From Macrostomum hystrix (lineage: Eukaryota > Animalia > Platyhelminthes), in the NCBI GenBank assembly GCA_950097015.1, contig CATNEN010000041.1, forward strand, positions 248,001 through 312,000: a DNA stretch of 64,000 nt. Direction: 5' to 3'. Below are positions 12,363-54,860 of the stretch, one piece after another; the first letter of the stretch is position 1, and each line of letters opens with the position of its first letter. Both the position numbers and the translations under genes were made by a program. The notes under the pieces are model-generated. The model was not told where the DNA came from and ran no database searches. It saw only the letters and a program-made list of their open reading frames with translations.

Positions 12363-14585
12363 TCAGCTGTCCTGTGCGACCTCCAGCTCACCAGCCAGGT
12401 CCGGCCTCTCAAGCCGCCGCAGCTGGCGCCACACGGCCAAGCGAGCTGCCGCGCCGCGCCCGTCCAGCGCGACCAGCCAGTCCTCCAGCTGCCCGACCGG
12501 CTCCGGCAGGGCTTCGGAGTCTCTTGTCGTGGCGTTCATCAACTCCTCCAGGCCGGTCCGCAAGCTGCTCAGCAGCTGCCCGGCGGCGAGATCTTCGGCC
12601 AGACGGCGCAGATTGTCCCGCGGCACTTCGGCCATCGGCTCCAGCAGGCCCCGGCTGTGATGGCAAAGCAGGCGACGTACTGTCGGGGCCGGAACCGCTC
12701 GCAGCCACTGGTCGTCCTCTGGGTCCACCTGAAACCGCGTGGTGTCGCAAATTCGCTCAGTGAAGCCTTTTTTAACACTTTGGCCTTGAACTTGTTGGAT
12801 AAAGCAACGCGATGCTTAAAGTAAAAATAAAGCAAATTTTCACCTTCGCACGGCCGGCGTTAAGCAGCAACTTGCAAGCCTCGATGTTGCCGGCTTCGGC
12901 TGCGGCAGCCAGCGGGCTGAGGCCGCGCCCGCCTGCCTGACGAGCCTCCCAGTCCGGTCTCAGACTGTGCCGGCCGCACAGCTCCAGAAGCTGGCGCAGA
13001 CCCGAGCCGTCGACACCGCGGGCCATCCAATGCACTGGCGTCCAGCCATCGCTGTCCGCTGAGTTCAGCGCCTCCGTCAGGCTCTCCATCAGGCTCTGCA
13101 GCTGGGCCTCGGCTCCGTCCTCCTCATCTGCCTGCGGCTGCTCGCTTGACTGGCTGGGCGGCCTGAGCAACGAAGAAGGCTGATCACTGCAGAACCGAGG
13201 CACGAAAGCACGAAATTCGTTTAATATTTATGATAAGACACTAGTATAGGGCTTGATGGACGTCAGTGGATTGCTAGTCACATGTGAATTACTTTGTACA
13301 TCGAGAACATTGTTAGAAAGTAATGATTAGATAATACGCTCGTAGAATACATGAACCACGGGATTTACAGTAGGACTACCAAGCCATTTTTCAGCAAGTT
13401 TTTATACGAAGGGCGATTTCTCCCCTCAGCCCTGAAAATATTTTGGCAGCGCCCGAATGCTAACAGCCTTGGGTGTTGACTGATTGGTTGACAGACTAGG
13501 CGAGGGTGTCCTGTGGTTCAGCTGCGCCTAATATTTAGGCTTGATCGGTGAAATCGGAGAGGTGTCCATAGTGGCCTAAATCCACCTGTTGTAGTCCTTG
13601 AAGGTCCAGCTGTCCATCTAGACGTTACCACCGAAGACGGAGTTTCTGGCCCGTGTTCTTGTGCTTACGTTGCTCCGTTCGGGCGCAGCAAAAAAAGATT
13701 TCACCGGGGCCGCTTGCTAGTTCTACTGTTATGAGCTTGTTCAAACGAATCCAGCTGATTAATGAGCTTAAGGTCCATGGTCTAAAATAGACTAAAGCTA
13801 ATCTCTGATGGGAATTGAATCATTTTAAAGGCCTTAACCGATTGGCATCAGAGGACGATGCCGGCTTCTTGCTCGCTACCCTCCGCCGCTGCTCCAGCAG
13901 GTCGAGCACTGCACCTAGCTCGTCTAGCACCAGGCCAAGGTCGCGCGGACGCCCTGCAGCGGCAGCTGCAGCAGCTGCATGCAACACGTTCCGTCCATGT
14001 ACATTTATGCCAAAGCGGCAGCAGTCAGAGGACGCCTTGGGTTTGGCACCTCGGCATTGACAGCAGCATCGGCAGCCGCAGTGCATGGCCTGGAGGCGCA
14101 CCAGCCTGCGAAGAACGTATTCGTCAGTTGCCGGCTCGTCGCCAACTGCCAGCGTGAGGGCGTCCTCGCCAGTGTCGGGCGCTCGTTGCCTGGCAGAGCG
14201 CGAGTTGCCGGACGTCTCCGCCAAGGAAATGAAATACCTGGCCGCTGACCAGTTGTCGGCGGCCACTGCGGCTGCTAAAGGATTCTGGCCGTGGCGGTTG
14301 GGGGACCGCAGGACCTCCGGGGTACTGCCGAGCAACTGTGCCATGGTGCAGGCAGCATCGCCGTCTGAGTCGCAGAATGCGTAGTAGGCCTCCTGCAGTA
14401 CGGGCAAGTACTTGAGCATTGCAGCCTGGTGCTGGGACCACAGCTTTAATTCAGCCTGTGTCAGCTGCTTGGGCTTTGTTGCCTCTGCATCGCACTCGAC
14501 TCCGCGTCCTGCGTGTGTTGTTGATGGCAGCGCGGGTCATCATTGATAATTCAGCTGCGAGAGAAAACGAGGACTCACCTTGCAT
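12363..14585 (-). CDS. Ankyrin-repeat protein with C-terminal death-domain-like module (family member 1), ~461 aa; exons 14585-14579, 14508-13839, 13186-12844, 12728-12363
   Basis: All three introns are GT-AG with matching phases (1, 2, 0); total 1386 nt. Ankyrin motifs: NRHGQNPLAAAV, GRNVLHAAA, DSDGWTPVHWMA, GLSPLAAAAEAGNIEACKLLLNAG. The C-terminus PVGQLEDWL...AVWRQLRRLERPDLAGEL resembles death-domain helices 5-6. The 7-nt first exon is the least certain part. Confidence 0.8.
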
Positions 14586-43973: not shown

Positions 43974-45377
43974 ATGTATCGCCAAGCTACACGCGTAAGC
44001 TACTTAGTAGTGCAGCAACAGCACCTGCTAGCTTTGACTCTGCTGCTGCTATGGGCCAGCCTAGCAACTGCCGCGCCAGACAAATGCAGCGTCTGTAACA
44101 AGCTGACCGAGGCATTCGAGAACGGCCTGCAGCGTACGGCCAAGGACAACTTCGGCGGCGGAAACACGCACTGGGAGGAGAGCCGGCTGGGCAGCTGGGC
44201 GCACAGCGAGACCCGGCTGGTTGACATCCAGGTTGCATAATCTCATTTTTTCAATGCCAATACCAAGTCACAGGATATATTCACAATCATACGATCCCGA
44301 TTATCTAAACCAAATCCCAGAATAAATTATGTCAGTCTTAGGATCCCAATGCTCATTCTCAGAATCCTCTACGATCCCGATTCCTGATCCTAGAAACTAG
44401 ACAGATCCGATCACTCTACTTATGAATACTGCATGGCAGTAGTAGTATGGTAGGAACATACATTCTGATTTCCACAGGAGCGGCTTTGCCAGGGCGAAGG
44501 CAAGGAGGAGACGGCTGTATGCCACGCCCTGTTGGAGCAGTTCGAGGAGGCCCTCGAGGCCTGGTGGTTCGGCGATTTCCGTCGCGATCCAGCCGGCTCA
44601 TCAGCCGTAGCCGCCGCCACCCTGCGCAGCCTTCTTTGCGTGGATCGAGGCCAGCTCTGCTGCCCGCATGGCTCCTTTGGGCCGAAGTGTGCGGCCTGCC
44701 CCGCCTGCGGTCTGCGCGGTGACTGCGACGGCAACGGCACCCGATCAGGCAGCGGTCGTTGCAACTGCCACGTCGGCTACGGGGGCGATCTGTGCGACAA
44801 GTGCGATGCGGGCCGCTACCTGGCCGACAGCTCGCCGCTCTGCCTCGCCTGCCATCCGGCCTGCGGACCTGCCGGCTGCGTAGCTGGCTCCGGCGTCAGC
44901 GACTGCCGCGACTGCGCCGCTGGCTACGAGCCCAGTGCCGACACCACTGCCTCCGATGCCGACGGTCGAGTCACCTGCATTGACGTGGACGAGTGCGCAT
45001 CCGTTACCAGCCCGTGCTCTGGGCCGCACGAGACCTGCGTGAACTCTCCCGGCAGCTTCGCCTGCCACTGCTTGTCTGGCTATCGGCGACCTGCGGCTGG
45101 TGGCGACTGCGAGCCGGAACCTGCGGAGACTCCCCGCCGTGATTCCGTGGAAACTCCAAGTGTAGATTTCACGGAGACTCCCAGCGGCGATTCCGTGGAA
45201 ACTCCAAGTGTAGATTCCACGGAGACTCCCAGCGGCGATTCCGCGGAAACTCTCAATGGGGATTCCACGGAGTCGACAGCCCCAGAGGAAAGGGGTGAGT
45301 TTGAATTGCACAAATTCCTAGGTAGTGAAGATGTGCTCGTTAAGTCCTACTTATTTAATATTTCAGACGAGTTGTGA
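43974..45377 (+). CDS. CRELD2: CRELD (cysteine-rich with EGF-like domains), soluble ER-type (CRELD2-like), ~361 aa; exons 43974-44231, 44478-45294, 45367-45377
   Basis: Signal peptide; CSVC motif; RTAKDNFGGGNTHWEESRLGSWAHSETRL (CRELD hallmark); CCPHGSFGPKC and laminin/EGF/furin-like repeats; calcium-binding EGF CIDVDEC...CVNSPGSFAC; no TM segment; the spliced C-terminus is RDEL. Confidence 0.93.
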
Positions 45378-46705: not shown

Positions 46706-48058
46706 CTAGGCCAGGAGGTCCTCCGCGCCAATGCTGCACAGAGCCTGCTGAATAAGACCGCTGAAGCCTGGCTCGTGGGCCAGGCTCGTGATCAGGGACT
46801 CAATCGGCTTCTCCGACATCCTGGCCAGAGTCACCGTGTCTGCGTGGCTGCGGGTGAAGGCCTCAACGAAAGCCAATTCCTTGCCACGCTGGGTGAGGCT
46901 CCGGACGAGGTGCTGCTGCTCTTCGGTGGACAGGCTGCGGACCGGCGCCGGAGTGGCGGCCGCCGACTGTTGCTGAAGCTCGCCAGTGGTGCCCATGCCG
47001 CTGTCCACCGTGCGCACCGGCGGGCCTTGCGTCATCCATGGCGCGGCCTCTCCAGCTGCAGCCGCCTCCGGCTCCGGTGGATCAGAGCCAGCAGCAGCAG
47101 CCAGGCCGTCAGCCACGCCCTCGCGGAACAGCTCAGTAAGCTCCGGACTTCCTGTTGCCGCAGCCATTTCAGCGACGGTGACGCCTTCGCTGTCCTCCTC
47201 CAACGGGTCGGCGCCGTTGTCAAGGAGGAATCGAGCTGCTCGAACCGCGCCGGCATTCACTGCTGACATCAGCGGCGTCCAGCGATTGCCGCGGTGCTGC
47301 CTCTCGTCAAGGTTGACGTTGATGCCAGTGTCGGTTGCGAAATCCAACAGCAGGCTCAGCATGTCAGTCCGGTCTCGAGTCGCCATCAGGTGAAGCACCG
47401 TGTCTCCAGCACGGTCATTCATGTGGATGGCGGCAGCTACCTGGCCTGCCACAAGCCTGCCCTCCTCGATCAGAGTCCTTGTTATTCTCAGTCCGGCTTC
47501 GAGGACCTCAACAGACTCCTCCTGTGCGCAGTGGTGCAGGAAGTTTCGGCCGTTGTTGTCGTACAGTCGGTGAAGCTGAGTCGGCTCTCTGACCAGCAGG
47601 CGCTCCATCAACTTCTCAGCTGAGCTGCCACTCGATGTGCTCAGCATGAGCATGGTTTCCCTACTCTGCGAACGGTCGTCAAGAGCCTCGGGATTTCGGC
47701 TAGCCGCAATGTCCAACAGCTTCTCGGCCCGCTCGCCCTGCTGCCGCAACAGAGCAGACGCCACGGGATTGTCGCCGTCGCTGTTGCGAACTCTCAGCCT
47801 GTCGGAGCTGCTGTTAAACACCTGCAAGAGAATTTCTTCACAGTTGGCGCCCTCGCTGTACTGGTGAATTGCAGTGGCCAGAATGCGCGGATAGTCTAGC
47901 AGCAGGCGTCGCTGAATCGCCTGTGGCAGAGCGCGGAACTTCAGGGACTCGGGCGTCTCGCCCTGGGCTTCAGAATCCAGGTTCAGCTGCTGCATCCGGC
48001 CCTCCAAGCTGGCAGGCTGCTGCCTGGTCTTGCTACTTCGAGGTGACTGGCCTTGCAT
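46706..48058 (-). CDS. Ankyrin-repeat protein with C-terminal death-fold-like module (family member 2), intronless, 450 aa
   Basis: Ankyrin motifs NSDGDNPVASAL, DNNGRNFLHHCA, DRAGDTVLHLMA, WTPLMSAVNAGAVRAARFLLDNGADP, EGVTVAEMAAATG. The linker contains VDSGMGT and is followed by a helical ~75-aa C-terminal domain. Confidence 0.88.
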   Translation of the reverse strand: MQGQSPRSSKTRQQPASLEGRMQQLNLDSEAQGETPESLKFRALPQAIQRRLLLDYPRILATAIHQYSEGANCEEILLQVFNSSSDRLRVRNSDGDNPVASALLRQQGERAEKLLDIAASRNPEALDDRSQSRETMLMLSTSSGSSAEKLMERLLVREPTQLHRLYDNNGRNFLHHCAQEESVEVLEAGLRITRTLIEEGRLVAGQVAAAIHMNDRAGDTVLHLMATRDRTDMLSLLLDFATDTGINVNLDERQHRGNRWTPLMSAVNAGAVRAARFLLDNGADPLEEDSEGVTVAEMAAATGSPELTELFREGVADGLAAAAGSDPPEPEAAAAGEAAPWMTQGPPVRTVDSGMGTTGELQQQSAAATPAPVRSLSTEEQQHLVRSLTQRGKELAFVEAFTRSHADTVTLARMSEKPIESLITSLAHEPGFSGLIQQALCSIGAEDLLA

Positions 48059-49539
48059 TGTGCTGAAAGTATTTTAGAAATGAAAAGCTCATGATATTGA
48101 GTATGCAGCTTAAACTGAACTTGATGTTTTTCATTTGAATTTAGGGTATAAAAAGTAGACTAGAGACATTTTATATTGAACAATAGCCAACAAGGAAATC
48201 AATTAGTAATTATCAATTAGCTTTAAAAAAGCTTTATCCAAAGGTTCTATATTCAGATTCTTGGTCTACATAGGCCACACAATTGGTAATACCATTGACA
48301 TTGTAATGTTTATGACCTTTCCTAAGATTATAAGTTGATGTATTATCAATTCTAGCTACAGGGGCCTACCTATAAATATTAACAACCAACCAACCAATAG
48401 CTAGCTAACCTACTTGTTTCAGATATAAAAATAATTTAATTGAAAGTGAAAATGACTGTATTTACTTTTTCAGATAATAAACTGTTAAGATAAGCTAGAA
48501 GTTATATTTTCTAATGAGTTTAATAGTTAGCTACAGTACTATTTCAATACACTATAGCTACATATAGTTATCACAATGTAAGGCTGAAAGTTTTTTCCCA
48601 GAACTATTTCCCAAATGTTATAGGAAGTACTATGCAACTGATTTATAATATTGCTAATTGCTAACATCAAGAATCATTGCAAAAATATTTTTATACTAGT
48701 AAAGTATCTACTAACCTAGTTACATGCTGAAATGTAAGTATCTATCAAGATTCAAGAAAGCTTGGGCCTAGCTATGACTAGCATAAATATGGGCCAGAGG
48801 AAATCTGCATTTGCAGAGGCCATAGGCTCTTAATAATATATAGATTGGAGCTTGTTCCTAATTATTTAATAGCTACTTGATAATTATAAATGTAAGATTT
48901 GATACATAGTTTAATAAGCTATAAAAACTGTTTTTAAGAGACAAGTAAAAAACTACAGTTTGCTCAGGTTTTCCTGTGTGTGTGCTGTGTGCTAGGCTTA
49001 GTTTGTAAGTGTAAGCTAAGCCTAGTACCTACAGTCATGAGTTAGCTACTTAAACTGTGAATAAACTAATAATTAGGCCTAAAAACTAATGTTCACTTAT
49101 TGCTTCGTTTTGTTTTTCGTCTGTTATATTATCTTCTTTTTTGTGACACCAATTACCAATAACTTAAAAAAATAATTTACTTATAACAATAATTACTTAG
49201 CATAGATTCATAGAACAAGGTACTAAAAATGGCACAGAGCTTTTAATCTACAGCAGTGTGTACGACTCCGCGGTCAGTCCGCGGCCAGTCCGTGGCAAGT
49301 CCGTGGAACGTTTTAAGTTAATTTTCTCGCCCCGGCAATTCCGCGGAAAATCCACAAAATTGATGCTTTTCTAACAAGGCCATTTGTGAATTTTGCGTGT
49401 TTTAATTTATTTATTTAAATGTCCCCAATTTATTTAGGCCTAGTTATGTGTGAGGCAGCGAAGAAATGAAGAACGGAGCACTGGGTTAGAAGGTTGAAAA
49501 AACTCGAGCCCTCCAAGGGCCTTGCGCACTAATATATAT

Positions 49540-52230
49540 TTTAGTCAGTCAGAGAAAACAACAATTACCCCCTATCCCGGCATAGACTGGTTTGGACAGA
49601 CCGACCCCCAGCCAATCAAAAAGCGCCACGCGCACTCTAAGGCGGCATGTAAGCCGCATACACAGCATCACCCCCTTCGAAAGCAAAAGGGGATTAACGG
49701 ATGGGGAAAACAACAGTCCATTGGTGCGCAAATTCAACAGTTCATTAACTTCATTTGCAAATTGCATATCAACTCGGGCTGAACCGACTTGGCGGTCTCC
49801 GGACCCGGCTGCCTCGCCTAGGCTGTGGCAGCGGCCTCTCGTTGCCCGGCGGCCTCACCGGTGGCTCCGGCAATGGTGTCGGCGCCATCAGTGTGCCGAG
49901 TCCAACGTCGGACGCGTCACTGGTCCGCCGCTGGTGTACTGGGTACGCTGTCCAGGTTATCGGAGTGCCATCGCGAGCCGTCTTCGAGCAGCCAGGACTC
50001 GGGGCCCAGCCGACGAATGATTTGCCGAACGTCGCCCAGCCATGTCGCAGCTTGTGAGCAGTCTGTGGCCGGCGGACGCGCACAGTGTCGCCAGCCTGCA
50101 GTCGTGAAGGTCGGGCGCCTCGACGACAATCGGTGGCTAGCCTGGCCTTCTCCTTGTTGGCTTGGTCTCGTCGCTCCGTGGCCTCCGCTGATGTCGCTTT
50201 CGATGTCGGCTGGCGGATGCCTCGGCTCCACTTGTTGAGTGGCCCTCGGAGCGGCCGGCTGATCATCAGCTCTCCAGGCGTCAGGCCCGTGGTCGCATTC
50301 GCCGTTGACCGGTAGCACTGCAGAAACTCGCGGAGCGCCTTCTTGAAGCTAATGCCGACCTTGAGATGGGCCTTCAACGACTCCTTCAGCGTACGGTTGA
50401 GCCGCTCGACATTCGAGTTCGACTGCGGATGGTACAGCGAAGTCTTGATGTGCTTCACGCCTTGGCCGGCCAGGAACTCCTCGAATGCGTGGCTGGTGAA
50501 CTGGGGCCCGTTGTTGTTGTTGTTGGCGTACGGATCCCTCGCTAGGCATATGGGGGGCAGCGCGCCGTCGCCTCGATGAAGATCCGCACCCGATTCTCTT
50601 GATTCTCTCTCCCTGTGGGTCCTCCCACAGGAGGGACATTGAGCCAGAAGAATGGAGGATGTTGCGGCGTTGATCGGCCCACCTGGGGCAGTCGAGCAGG
50701 AAGTTCCGCGTGTCCTCCTGGGGAGCGTTGCAGTGGGGGGCAAGACGCAGCGGGTACCTTGCCCCAGCGGTGTAGGGTAGCTTGCAGGAAAGGCGCGCGG
50801 TTCGCCGAGTTGGAACAGCGCCACCTCCGCCGCACGAGGCCAGGCATGGCCGACCTGCAGCCGCTTGCCACCGCTGAGTCGATGTGGATGGTCCAGAGGG
50901 ACTAGGTATTCGAATGCTCGGTACGTTGTCGGTCATAATCTTGGATGGCAGCTCTCTTCGACGTTCCTCCTCCCCGCTCTCTATTTTTGGTTGCTTTAGA
51001 GTTTTTACTAGTTTTTGTTTCATTTTGCCTTTTTTTGTCGTTCTTCTTCCGTCTTCTGTTTTGGTGTTCTTAGCCTGTTCGCTCTTCTTCTCCTCTGTTG
51101 TCCGGTTGAACTTACTGTTGTTTTTGGAGATGCTCGGTTTAGTCACTTCCGGGCCGCTCCGTTGAAGGAAGGTTTGCCTACAGAACCCAGTTGTTACTCT
51201 GAGTCTATAGGCCTCTCCCCCCAACTTCTTCTTTGCCAGCCTGGTCCAGGCCGCTCGGCACTGTCGCGGAAGTGAGAAATCTTGGCCTGGCAAACTGTAG
51301 ACACCTCGAATGGCTCATTGTCGTCATCGTCATCCTTGACGGTGCGGACCTTACGTCGCTGTCGGCAACATGACTTGAAATGACCGACCCGGTGGCAGTG
51401 CAGGCAGGACTTGTCCTTCGCTGGACACTCAATGCGCAGGTGGCATGCCCAGCCAATCCGCAGTTGCCGCATCGCGCGTCCGAGCTAGATTTCTGCGGCA
51501 TCGCATGCTTGGGACCCTTGCGTGGCGGACGCTGGCTGATCTTCTGGATGCGGGACTCCTGCTCCTTGTCGCTCTTGCCGTCGCGCAGGTTCTTGGCGTC
51601 GTTGATGGCGGATTCGACTTGAATCGCTAGGGCTGTGGCTGTCTCCAGCTCGAGCACCTTCTCCATGAGCAGTCGCTCTCTGATGCGTGGCGAATGGGTC
51701 TTCTCTATGATCTGGTCCCTGATCATCTGGTCTTGAAGAGCGCCGTATTCGCAGTCTGCTGCGAGTTCGCAAAGGGCGTCAACGAACTGGCTGATCGGCT
51801 CGCCAGACATCTGGGCGCGTGACTTAAATCTGTAGCGGTTGCTGATGGTGCTATGCGACTCGCCGAAGATCGTCTTCAGCTCTTTCACCAGCTTTGCTCC
51901 TGAAAATCTTTCACCAGTCAAAGGTGCCGACGTTTGCCGTTGGCAGATTCCTCAGCGCGTAGATTCGCTGGCCCTCCTCGCCAAGCAGATGGATGAGTAT
52001 CGCCTTCTTGCGTGCGTCCGATGCTTCGTTAAGGTCCAAGGCCTCCAGGTAGATCTTGAATCCTTCGATCCAACGATTCCAAGGCGTGTGTGGCTGTCCT
52101 GGGTAGGCGAGAAACACGCGTGGCACGGAAATGCTCAGGCTCGTCACCATGTTATGTGTACACAACAGTATCCGTATCTGTAAGTGAATGACAGCAAGCG
52201 AATCGTATTTCCCTCACTGAAGCTGGATAG
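49540..52230 (-). mobile_element. Decayed, internally deleted Ty3/Gypsy LTR retrotransposon (gag + integrase C-half)
   Basis: Gag motifs WNRWIEGFKIYLEA...KKAILIHLLGEEG, RYRFKSRAQMSGEPISQFV..L..LAADCEYG..QDQMIRDQII and zinc knuckles (CxxC..GH). Integrase NGPQFTSHAFEEFL...YHPQSNSNVERLNRTLK. PBS-like tggtgacgag (52149-52140) follows CA, and PPT-like aagggggtga (49677-49668) precedes TG. Protease, RT and RNase H are absent, and the two LTR remnants could not be aligned to each other. Confidence 0.9.
50510..51200 (-). mobile_element. Non-LTR retrotransposon (LINE) remnant nested in the Gypsy element
   Basis: Across frameshifts it reads EVALFQL.ANRAPFLQATLHRWGKVPAASCPHCNAPQEDTRNFLLDCPRW (ORF2 C-terminal CCHC region). 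It ends in an (aac)5 tail that abuts the integrase NGPQF. The 5' boundary is approximate. Confidence 0.7.
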
Positions 52231-52289
52231 GATAGCTGTGGGGAAGTGAAACAAACACAAATTTACGTATGAAATATAGGAGTTTTTTA

Positions 52290-52575
52290 ACTCCATCGGG
52301 CCAGATGTGCAGCCGACAGCGCAGCCGTAGCTATTGCGCATGGACTGAATGCTGCGTACGGCTGTTCAGTCAATGGACTGGGGGGGGACGCCACGCCCAC
52401 CCTCAATTACTCCAACTGCTGCTGGTGCCCATCCCGTTTAACAGATGGGTGAACTGAAGCAATGCAGAGATGTATCTAATTGCTAAAGGACACAAATTGT
52501 TTCTGTGGAGTTGTAAGTGCCTCACGACCTTAAAGTCGTAAGTCCGACGCTCTAGCCACAAGGCTACAACCCCCT
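52290..52575 (-). mobile_element. tRNA-derived SINE, family B, copy 2
   Basis: The reverse complement begins gggggttgtagccttgtggctagagcgtcggacttacgact (tRNA-like) and contains cttcagttcacccatctgttaaacgggatgggcacc (CORE-domain-like) and ccccagtccattgactgaacag, shared with 33090-33170. Confidence 0.7.
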
Positions 52576-53570
52576 TCCACCTATAAGAGTGGAAGGACAA
52601 ATGCAACGTTTTCAGAAAAATTTTGTGAGTCTTGTTTTCACCAAAAGATTGAGATTGGAATTTTTTACATGAAAATTAAAAGATCATTGAATGGTTTTGT
52701 TTTTCATTTTCATCATTTTTGTAAGCTGATCTATAAAGCTCTTATTAGCATATGATGTACCTTACATGTTGCTTCCAGGAATTTCACACAGCTTTATTTC
52801 TGAAAACCTTATCTTCGTGTTTTTTCACTACTAGGCCTTTATTAATAACAGTGACAGGGCTTAAACAATAAACGAGTCATAAGGCTTGAATTCCATATTC
52901 ATAAATGTATTTGATAATTGATCAGATTATCAAATTAGAGAAAACAAATAGCTTGTTTCTTAGTGGTTTTGTTGTTTCAGGAGCATAGGTATTTTACACC
53001 GCACACGGGACAGCATGTAGAGAAGCGGAAAATGGATATGAAACCTTTGACAGAAAGCTTTTAAAGCTTGACAGAAATCGATGAAGAAAGCTAATATCAA
53101 AATATGAGCCCTTAATCCGCTTCCAAACAAAAACTGTCACTAAATTTGTGCAGATAAACTGAAAACCTCTTGTCCCCGCAGCGCATTTTTAGGCGAAAGC
53201 AGCCTCCTAAACTCTAGAGTTTTAAGTTTCCTGTCCCTCAACTCCCAGTCTCTAGTCAGTGAGCGTCTGCACAATGTTGATTTCAGCCCAATCTGGAACT
53301 GCAAGCGCGCACTGCTGTATGCAGACACTGTCCAATGCCTGACAAGTAAGAAGCGAATTCGTAAGATCTAAAAATAGAAACGTTCTCCACCCGCGGATTG
53401 TTCACGGCGAGCCCAGCTAACTAAATTGCTAGAAACTATTTCGCATGTAACCCGCGACCCTGCATTTCATATAAATACTGCAGAGCCTCAAGACGAAATC
53501 AAACGCAAGGCGAGATCCATCAAAGAGTTTTTATGACACAAAAAGTCCTTTAAAACTTAAACTCGAGCAA

Positions 53571-54860
53571 ATGAATCTTCAAATGCAGCAGCTGAACCTA
53601 GATTCTGAAGCCCAGGGCGAGACGCCCGAGTCCCTGAGGTTCCGCGCTCTGCCACAGGCGATTCAGCGACGCCTGCTGCTAGACTATCCGCGCATTCTGG
53701 CCACTGCAATTCACCAGTACAGCGAGGGCGCCAACTGTGAAGAAATTCTCTTGCAGGCGTTTAACAGCAGCTCCGACAGGCTGAGAGTTCGCAACAGCGA
53801 CGGCGACAATCCCGTGGCGTCTGCTCTGTTGCGGCAGCAGGGCGAGCGGGCCGAGAAGCTGTTGGACATTGCGGCTAGTCAAAATCCCGAGGCTCTTGAC
53901 GACCGCTCGCAGAGTAGGGAAACCATGCTCATGCTGAGCACATCGAGTGGCAGCTCAGCTGAGAATTTGATGGAGCGCCTGCTGGTCAGAGAGCCGACTC
54001 AGCTTCACCGACTGTACGACAACAACGGCCGAAACTTCCTGCACCACTGCGCACTGGAGGAGTCTGTTGAGGTCCTCGAAGCCGGACTGAGAATAACAAG
54101 GACTCTGATCGAGGAGGGCAGGCTTGTGGCAGGCCAGGTAGCTGCCGCCATCCACATGAATGACCGTGCTGGAGACACGGTGCTTCACCTGATGGCGACT
54201 CGAGACCGGACTGACATGCTGAGCCTGCTGTTGGATTTCGCAACCAACACTGGCATCAACGTCAACCTTGACGAGAGGCAACACCGCGGCAATCGCTGGA
54301 CGCCGCTGATGTCAGCAGTGAATGCCGGCGCGGTTCAAGCAGCTCGATTCCTCCTTGACAACGGCGCCGACCCGTTGGAGGAGGACAGCGAAGGCTCCAG
54401 TGGCGAGGATCTGTCTCTCAGCAGACTCGAGAATGAAGAGTCCGCTGTTGAGATGGACTTTGAGGAGCAGCAGGACCCCATTACTCAAAGCACTGTTGTT
54501 CCTGCAGTGATGGCAAGCTTCAGAATCGAATCATGGATGAAGCCCGTGAACTCGGTCGACAGTGGTGTGGCCTCTGTACCCAGTGTGCTCGACAACATCC
54601 CTACAGCTCTGCCTTTACTGGACGAGGAATATTCAGCAGAGGAAATGGCCGAGCTGGAAATTCGATTGCTGCACAGTGGACAAACTCAGGACTTCCTTGC
54701 CAAACTGATTCGCCAAGACGAACAGCTGAGCGATGTAGGTCTGGCTGGAATGTCTGACAAGCCGGTTAGTGCTGCCTTCAGCATCTGGGCGGCTCAAGGA
54801 GTTCAAGTTAGACGGCTAGTCGTGCTGGCGGCTCTTAAGGAACTTTATGAAAGCCCATGA
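53571..54860 (+). CDS. Ankyrin-repeat protein with C-terminal death-fold-like module (family member 3), intronless, 429 aa
   Basis: Residues 5-275 are near-identical to member 2. The linker contains VDSGVAS. The C-terminal helical domain YSAEEMAELEIRLLHSG...MSDKPVSAAFSIWAAQG is homologous to, but diverged from, that of member 2. Confidence 0.88.
   Translation: MNLQMQQLNLDSEAQGETPESLRFRALPQAIQRRLLLDYPRILATAIHQYSEGANCEEILLQAFNSSSDRLRVRNSDGDNPVASALLRQQGERAEKLLDIAASQNPEALDDRSQSRETMLMLSTSSGSSAENLMERLLVREPTQLHRLYDNNGRNFLHHCALEESVEVLEAGLRITRTLIEEGRLVAGQVAAAIHMNDRAGDTVLHLMATRDRTDMLSLLLDFATNTGINVNLDERQHRGNRWTPLMSAVNAGAVQAARFLLDNGADPLEEDSEGSSGEDLSLSRLENEESAVEMDFEEQQDPITQSTVVPAVMASFRIESWMKPVNSVDSGVASVPSVLDNIPTALPLLDEEYSAEEMAELEIRLLHSGQTQDFLAKLIRQDEQLSDVGLAGMSDKPVSAAFSIWAAQGVQVRRLVVLAALKELYESP

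Follow-up and report, generated by a model that had tools for sequence, protein, structure and literature searches.

A conserved DSG motif with the features of a beta-TrCP phosphodegron in the linkers of lineage-restricted ankyrin and death-domain proteins of Macrostomum hystrix

What function might a short motif serve when it is shared by two protein tails that have otherwise diverged? The question is raised by a head-to-head pair of genes, here called A and B, in the flatworm Macrostomum hystrix, which lie in a stretch of 64,000 nucleotides (nt) that we call the window (GenBank assembly GCA_950097015.1, contig CATNEN010000041.1, positions 248,001 to 312,000 of the forward strand). The window is part of contig C41 of a 220-Mb, 42-contig assembly, and whole-genome searches described below cover that assembly. 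A first-pass annotation had read the motif, DSGxx(S/T), as a phosphodegron and the proteins as following a logic like that of IkB or NF-kB p105. The two copies that it located, DSGMGT at 46988-47005 (minus strand) and DSGVAS at 54558-54575 (plus strand), translate exactly and lie inside intact open reading frames (ORFs), and the orientation of the pair is evident from the ORF maps and translations. The genes and motifs are as follows.

46706..48058, minus strand: gene A, an intact ORF of 450 amino acids without introns, encoding an ankyrin stack, then an acidic linker, then a predicted death domain; its colinear ortholog in Macrostomum lignano is P0002.
46988..47008, minus strand: motif of A, V-D-S-G-M-G-T, residues 351-357, from translation and alignment.
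53571..54860, plus strand: gene B, an intact ORF of 429 amino acids without introns, with the architecture of A and the other tail type; M. lignano P0001 covers 99% of its length.
54555..54575, plus strand: motif of B, V-D-S-G-V-A-S, residues 329-335, from translation and alignment, with a predicted local distance difference test (pLDDT) score below 50 around it.

The motif is kept well beyond this pair. A third paralog, C, is located at C10:1,109,033-1,110,034, and all three have orthologs in M. lignano, where P0001 carries the B-type tail, P0002 the A-type tail, and P0004 is the ortholog of C; protein identity of A and B to the M. lignano proteins is 59-62%. The pattern [VI]-D-S-G-[VM]-x-[ST] is retained in six of the six proteins compared, A, B, and C in each of the two Macrostomum species, as VDSGMGT in A (IDSGMCT in M. 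lignano), VDSGVAS in B (IDSGVSS in M. lignano), and VDSGVQS in C of both. Conservation across orthologs and paralogs was one of the checks set beforehand for the degron claim, and the motif came through it in three paralog types and two species. Indeed, from L286 of B, in the ankyrin cap, to L362, in the first death-domain helix, D330, S331, and G332 are the sole invariant columns in both five- and six-protein alignments, which bears out the earlier description of the motif as nearly the only conserved element of the linkers. The flanking linker is far less alike, with identities between orthologs of 11/35, 11/43, and 9/26 upstream and 4/20, 4/20, and 8/14 downstream, and lower still between paralogs, while pairwise identity within the motif ranges from 4/7 to 7/7 and the exchanges are conservative only. 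Among the positions that a degron constrains, the hydrophobic one varies only between V and M, and the second acceptor only between S and T.

Chance gives a poor account of this pattern. Across the open six-frame segments of the window (26,967 residues), DSG..[ST] matches only twice, at the A and B motifs, and shuffled linkers contain a match in 0.5-0.7% of trials. The VDSG 4-mer is common to the linkers of all three paralogs of this genome, and any shared 4-mer was obtained in 28 of 20,000 shuffles (0.14%). Copying between the genes has to be considered as well, because A and B share a long inverted repeat whose arms are the following.

47162..47995, minus strand: inverted-repeat arm in gene A, the homogenized ankyrin-coding tract, 834 nt and 97% identical, ending 157 nt before the A motif.
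53583..54416, plus strand: inverted-repeat arm in gene B, pairing with the gene A arm and ending 141 nt before the B motif.

Past the border of the repeat, the DNA of the A and B tails diverges abruptly, and synonymous differences separate A from B at three of the four VDSG codons (GTG/GTC, AGC/AGT, and GGC/GGT). Because the motif is 141-157 nt away from the homogenized tract and carries these three synonymous differences, it is old and selected rather than a product of recent gene conversion. On these alignments, the motif is a conserved island under purifying selection in a fast-evolving linker. The ankyrin-coding halves have had a different history, with A and B agreeing at 210/216 positions in M. 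hystrix and at 215/216 in M. lignano, compared with 170/216 between orthologs of the two species, while the tails cluster by type across both species, A with A and B with B. Since the ankyrin regions are alike within a species and the tails are alike by type, the A/B duplication is most simply placed before the species split, with the 5' halves homogenized separately in each lineage by gene conversion that has a sharp 3' border. As judged from these identities, the ankyrin halves of A and B are under concerted evolution in both Macrostomum species.

The setting of the motif in the protein was defined from domain searches and structure prediction, and the segments are listed here.

53733..54386, plus strand: ankyrin-repeat stack of B, approximately residues 55-272, from Pfam, with AlphaFold pLDDT 80-97 and Foldseek matches to diverse ankyrin proteins.
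54417..54635, plus strand: acidic linker of B, approximately residues 283-355, mostly predicted to be disordered after a short capping helix.
54636..54851, plus strand: predicted death domain of B, approximately residues 356-427, from the profile match to p75NTR, a tail model of pLDDT 83, and VIA-align.
46928..47161, minus strand: acidic, Ala/Pro-rich linker of A, approximately residues 300-377, from composition and alignment.
46709..46927, minus strand: predicted death domain of A, with the A-type tail, approximately residues 378-450, aligned with the B tail in the profile that matches death domains.

Pfam scans of A and B recognize ankyrin repeats only, with the last matches near residue 289 in A and residue 272 in B, and both a Foldseek search with the full model and an Atlas feature search return generic ankyrin proteins only. 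Aspartate and glutamate make up 18-24% of the A and B linkers and lysine and arginine 3%. The AlphaFold model of B, which was built on 12 sequences, has pLDDT below 50 for residues 290-350 and a helical domain immediately after, at residues 356-427. The motifs thus do sit in an acidic linker between the ankyrins and a helical tail, as had been proposed, and in the model the degron-like motif falls in an accessible, predicted-disordered segment.

The helical tail itself had no assigned family. A Pfam scan of six tails gave no match to a death-fold family at E up to 10, and the Pfam Death model is probably missed because the domain is too diverged for a single-sequence scan. A profile of 10 tail sequences searched against PDB sequences matched the death domain of p75NTR from end to end (E = 1e-4) and also that of NRADD (E = 0.034). 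When the tail of B was modelled alone (pLDDT 83), VIA-align returned near-exclusively death-fold structures, with TRADD at Z 7.2, RAIDD at 6.7, the caspase-8 DED at 6.5, and MALT1 at 6.4, followed in lower rows by the p105 death domain at 6.0, Pelle at 5.8, and p100 at 5.5; Foldseek with the same model placed the TRADD, UNC5H2, and p75NTR death domains in its top rows, with weak E-values. From the profile and the model together, we accept the tails of A and B as death domains.

The recognition consensus of beta-TrCP is DS(P)G-psi-X-S(P) (PMC10487276), and the six motifs (DSGMGT, DSGMCT, DSGVAS, DSGVSS, DSGVQS, and DSGVQS) fit it at all constrained positions; at the last of these, Thr is rarer than Ser in such degrons. 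That only V/M and S/T exchanges are seen is the pattern that a phosphodegron predicts. The cognate reader, beta-TrCP, is also encoded in the same genome, by an ortholog with at least three exons at C24:5042100-5046036 (L031): one for the D domain, the F-box, and the first WD repeat, one for the middle WD repeats, and one for the last WD repeats, after which comes an acidic Gly/Asp-rich tail. Its Beta-TrCP_D match scores 67.9 bits, the F-box and WD40 exons are readable, and a WD40 exon aligns with human FBXW1A at 377.6 bits, with approximately 86% identity over 168 residues as counted from the alignment. Our leading interpretation, which we hold tentatively and at somewhat less than an even chance, is that the motif is a beta-TrCP-type phosphodegron controlling the turnover of a lineage-restricted adaptor built from ankyrins and a death domain. 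A, B, and C would then be adaptor-type proteins, in which approximately seven ankyrin repeats are joined through an acidic, disordered linker of 70-90 residues to a death domain at the C-terminus. Once a kinase had phosphorylated both the Ser at position 2 of the motif and the Ser or Thr at position 6, this doubly modified turn would be recognized by the WD40 face of SCF-beta-TrCP, and the bound protein would be ubiquitinated and then degraded or clipped, such that a signal could be coupled to the amount of an ankyrin and death-domain scaffold. What the data show is the domain architecture, the predicted disorder of the linker, the conservation of the motif, and a reader encoded in the genome; the phosphorylation, the beta-TrCP binding, the turnover, the kinase, and the pathway in which A, B, and C would act are all steps that we infer.

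Several observations weigh against this interpretation. There is no conserved Lys upstream of the motif; a Lys lies at -7 in B, -19 in M. lignano B, and -12 in M. lignano A, the upstream linkers of A and C contain none, and the linker of gene A is without any Lys, though lysines are present in the folded domains. The conserved V/I that precedes the Asp falls outside the degron consensus and is compatible with a protease site too. Searches of the genome with IKBKB_SDD and TBK1_ULD gave no match, by which an absence of IKK is not shown, and a NEMO-type CC2-LZ match reached 31.8 bits, under the 35.3-bit cut-off. The scope of the conservation is itself small, at only 6-7 residues in two species and three paralog lineages. 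Finally, in four public runs, whose type is unrecorded or guessed and which are stored as contigs, contigs of gene A were seen and none over the tail of gene B. The run contigs that cover the shared tract have gene A flanks at both ends, and the word share for X5-X8 is 0.79, compared with approximately 0.4 estimated for gene A alone; because the share exceeds the estimate for gene A only, words specific to B are probably present in the runs.

The alternative that survives best, although we consider it unlikely, is that the motif is another kind of short linear motif, such as a docking or phosphorylation site for a partner other than beta-TrCP, or that it folds back onto the ankyrin groove or death domain of its own protein, with no role in degradation. 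Conservation shows constraint and not which reader imposes it, and the A and B orthologs share a [ST]-W-[LM] element 9-15 residues upstream of the motif, which suggests that the binding epitope could be longer. Ankyrin grooves bind extended peptides, and complexes of the AnkB autoinhibition segment are among the fold matches of B. Nevertheless, the Trp element is absent from paralog C, AlphaFold docks the linker nowhere (pLDDT <50), and all of the constrained degron positions are kept, for which beta-TrCP is to our knowledge the sole known reader of D-pS-G-psi-x-pS. Inspection of the alignments led us to reject LIR, TRAF, and pLxIS motifs as candidates in the linker.

A less probable explanation, and one that we regard as doubtful, is that the core of the motif is a site for a caspase or another Asp-specific protease, [VI]-D|S-G, at which the ankyrins would be separated from the death domain in the manner of Dredd cutting Relish. 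The genome has unusual caspases, ankyrin-prodomain ones included (PMC11463336). In six of six proteins, the Asp at P1 never changes, small residues (Ser and Gly) occupy P1' and P2', and Val or Ile occupies P2, and the site lies in a predicted-disordered inter-domain linker. The P4-P2 residues are, however, NSV, RTV, ESV, RYI, GTI, and SLV, with Glu never at P3 and with P4 variable, whereas caspases prefer DExD or (I/L/V)ExD, and cleavage after the Asp leaves unexplained why a hydrophobic residue at +3 and Ser/Thr at +5 are conserved.

The comparison made in the first-pass annotation was with IkB and p105, and it was made there with the caution that the proteins are not simple orthologs of either. 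NF-kB p105 combines ankyrins, a death domain, and a DSG degron (PMC8286839, PMC10487276), and the C-terminal half of NF-kB1 p105 or NF-kB2 p100, including IkB-gamma, resembles A and B in having an ankyrin stack, a death domain, and a DSG-type motif in one polypeptide. A and B differ in lacking a Rel-homology domain and a glycine-rich region, in having the motif between the ankyrins and the death domain rather than C-terminal to the death domain, and in its spacing, which is canonical DSGxx[ST] in A and B but DSG(X)3S in p105; no specific sequence kinship to the ankyrins or death domain of p105/p100 was found. In the case of IkB-alpha/beta/epsilon and Cactus, the likeness lies in the approximate length of the ankyrin stack and in a DSG-psi-x-S degron within a disordered region, and IkB-beta is among the top fold matches, but their degron is N-terminal to the ankyrins, they have no death domain, and the fold match is no better than those to DARPins, gankyrin, and Notch. 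Ankyrin repeats at the N-terminus and a death domain at the C-terminus also recall ANKDD1A/B and the canonical ankyrins; in sequence, the repeat region matches ankyrin-1/2 best, and ankyrin death domains are among the fold matches of the tail. Canonical ankyrins differ in having ZU5-UPA modules as well, and we know of no conserved DSG degron in ANKDD1A/B or in ankyrin linkers. The p75NTR and NRADD death domains, which are the best profile matches of the tail over the whole domain, belong to the cytoplasmic tails of transmembrane receptors without ankyrins or a degron.

That A, B, and C are true, diverged homologs of the IkB/p105 C-terminal half, of the IkB-gamma kind, that would retain Rel-homology factors in the cytoplasm until destroyed on signal is a reading to which we give very little weight. 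The same three parts are present as in the p105 C-terminal half, VIA-align matches the tail to the p105 and p100 death domains among others, IkB-beta is second in the full-model Foldseek search, and the genome contains Rel-like exons that match positions 1-88 of the 169-position RHD_DNA_bind at up to 46.7 bits, above the Pfam cut-off, with an RFRYE[ST]E core and best PDB matches to p65, RelB, and p50. The ankyrins, however, match ankyrin-1/2 (61 bits), NOMPC, and DARPins far above p100 (32 bits, approximately rank 50), the tail profile reaches p75NTR and NRADD but not p105 or p100 at E up to 10, and the position of the degron is that of neither IkB nor p105. These comparisons lend no support to a kinship between A, B, and C and IkB/p105, and the earlier caution against simple orthology was well placed. 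As to the proposed IkB/p105-like logic, the fit to the degron consensus, the predicted death domain, and the conserved beta-TrCP speak for it, and nothing ties the ankyrins or the death domain to IkB/p105 in particular.

A companion suggestion was to look in the genome for a Rel-homology protein and IKK-like kinases. The half-domain Rel-like exons occur in tandem arrays (L021-L025, L039).

C7:389919-407456: tandem array of three Rel-like exons.
C7:12.50 Mb: tandem array of two Rel-like exons.
C1:23.99-24.02 Mb: tandem array of three Rel-like exons.

Downstream of these exons on C7 and C1, no dimerization or ankyrin domain was seen. Exons matching RHD_dimer are found on C24, C38, and C26, those at C24:2419740-2420027 and C38:8417063-8417353 (L027, L028) at approximately 76 bits, and the one on C24, the only RHD_dimer exon checked, is NFAT5-like (64 bits to PDB 1imh). 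The search thus succeeded in part, with half-domain Rel-like exons and NFAT5-like genes present, while neither a complete Rel protein nor an IKK-specific domain was found in the genome; both the halved DNA-binding domain and the NFAT5-like dimerization match count against the homolog reading. Platyhelminthes have been reported to lack p50/p105, FADD, and CRADD (PMC11432056, PMC11463336), and the first of these reports speaks against homology as well (PMC11432056). Given that report, the Rel-like exon arrays are unexpected in this phylum.

By analogy with p105, whose death domain mediates interaction with IKK (PMC8286839), one could also imagine a split IkB-like switch, in which free-standing proteins with ankyrins, degron, and death domain would hold Rel-like or NFAT-type factors and would be destroyed through beta-TrCP after a kinase had been recruited by the death domain, acting as a kinase dock; we consider this just as improbable as homology. 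Least credible of all is that the motif is a functionless, neutral leftover of common ancestry, since, even granting that it is short and known from three independent paralog lineages in two species, identity in the flanking linker is down to 10-35% and the motif has been kept, three synonymous codon changes have accumulated inside VDSG, and the shuffles rarely share a 4-mer.

A beta-TrCP-type degron, if that is what the motif is, would belong to a narrow group of proteins. A word search with whole B, in which ankyrin words saturated the 8000 candidates and which returned at least three matches, gave M. lignano proteins as the closest database relatives among the matches listed. Across the whole genome, a profile of linker and tail matches nothing besides A, B, and C, with the motif kept in three of three, and an exhaustive search with the linker and tail profile of 1.8 billion representative proteins matches only P0001 and P0004 of M. 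lignano; because this protein library was clustered at 50% identity, any closer Macrostomum orthologs would sit hidden inside the P0001 and P0004 clusters. A word search with the tail region of gene A gave no match, and Ala-rich words probably crowded its candidates, so that it is uninformative on absence. The A/B/C subfamily appears to be small and confined to Macrostomum as far as these libraries show. The M. lignano orthologs (Mlig014147.g1, Mlig031275.g2, and P0004) are mentioned in no paper found.

Remoter paralogs with the plan of ankyrins followed by a helical tail are numerous and include a tandem array of six genes on C39 and one further gene in the window, and the motif is present in none of them. 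The gene in the window, which the first-pass annotation had called member 1 and described as lacking the motif, has indeed no DSG in any minus-strand frame.

12363..14585, minus strand: member 1, given for context only, a spliced, remoter paralog with ankyrins and a death-like tail, without the motif.

The array at C39:14701192-14713759 consists of six related ankyrin genes of the wider family (L009-L011, L013, L014, L016). The gene L009 has kept a death-like tail and has TVDSLPRT in place of the VDSG of A, B, and C, and the other five genes of the array end soon after the ankyrins.

Innate-immune and cell-death signalling is poorly mapped in flatworms, and this genome nonetheless contains a large lineage-specific expansion of ankyrin and death-domain genes. 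A candidate beta-TrCP-type degron in three of the encoded proteins is a hypothesis open to a cheap test in M. lignano, where all three have orthologs and where RNA interference works. If the degron interpretation is true, a lophotrochozoan would be shown to destroy a death-domain scaffold in a regulated manner, and the trio of ankyrins, death domain, and degron would have come together separately from NF-kB p105 or else be its split remnant. If it fails, the motif would still mark a conserved interaction site.

The surroundings of the pair offer some further observations. A second copy of the head-to-head pair lies on contig C10 (C10:374711-382858) and encodes proteins 100% identical to those of the window. 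This copy is a haplotig or else a segmental duplication of very recent date. In the window, the spacer between A and B is 5.5 kb long, and its minus strand holds overlapping long ORFs at 49769-51921 with weak matches to rve_3 (E = 0.008) and to PNMA/gag-like sequences (E = 0.0025), which are probably a decayed retroelement. Just past the 3' end of gene A, on the opposite strand, an ORF at 44532-45377 (plus) encodes a calcium-binding EGF domain (E = 4.6e-10).

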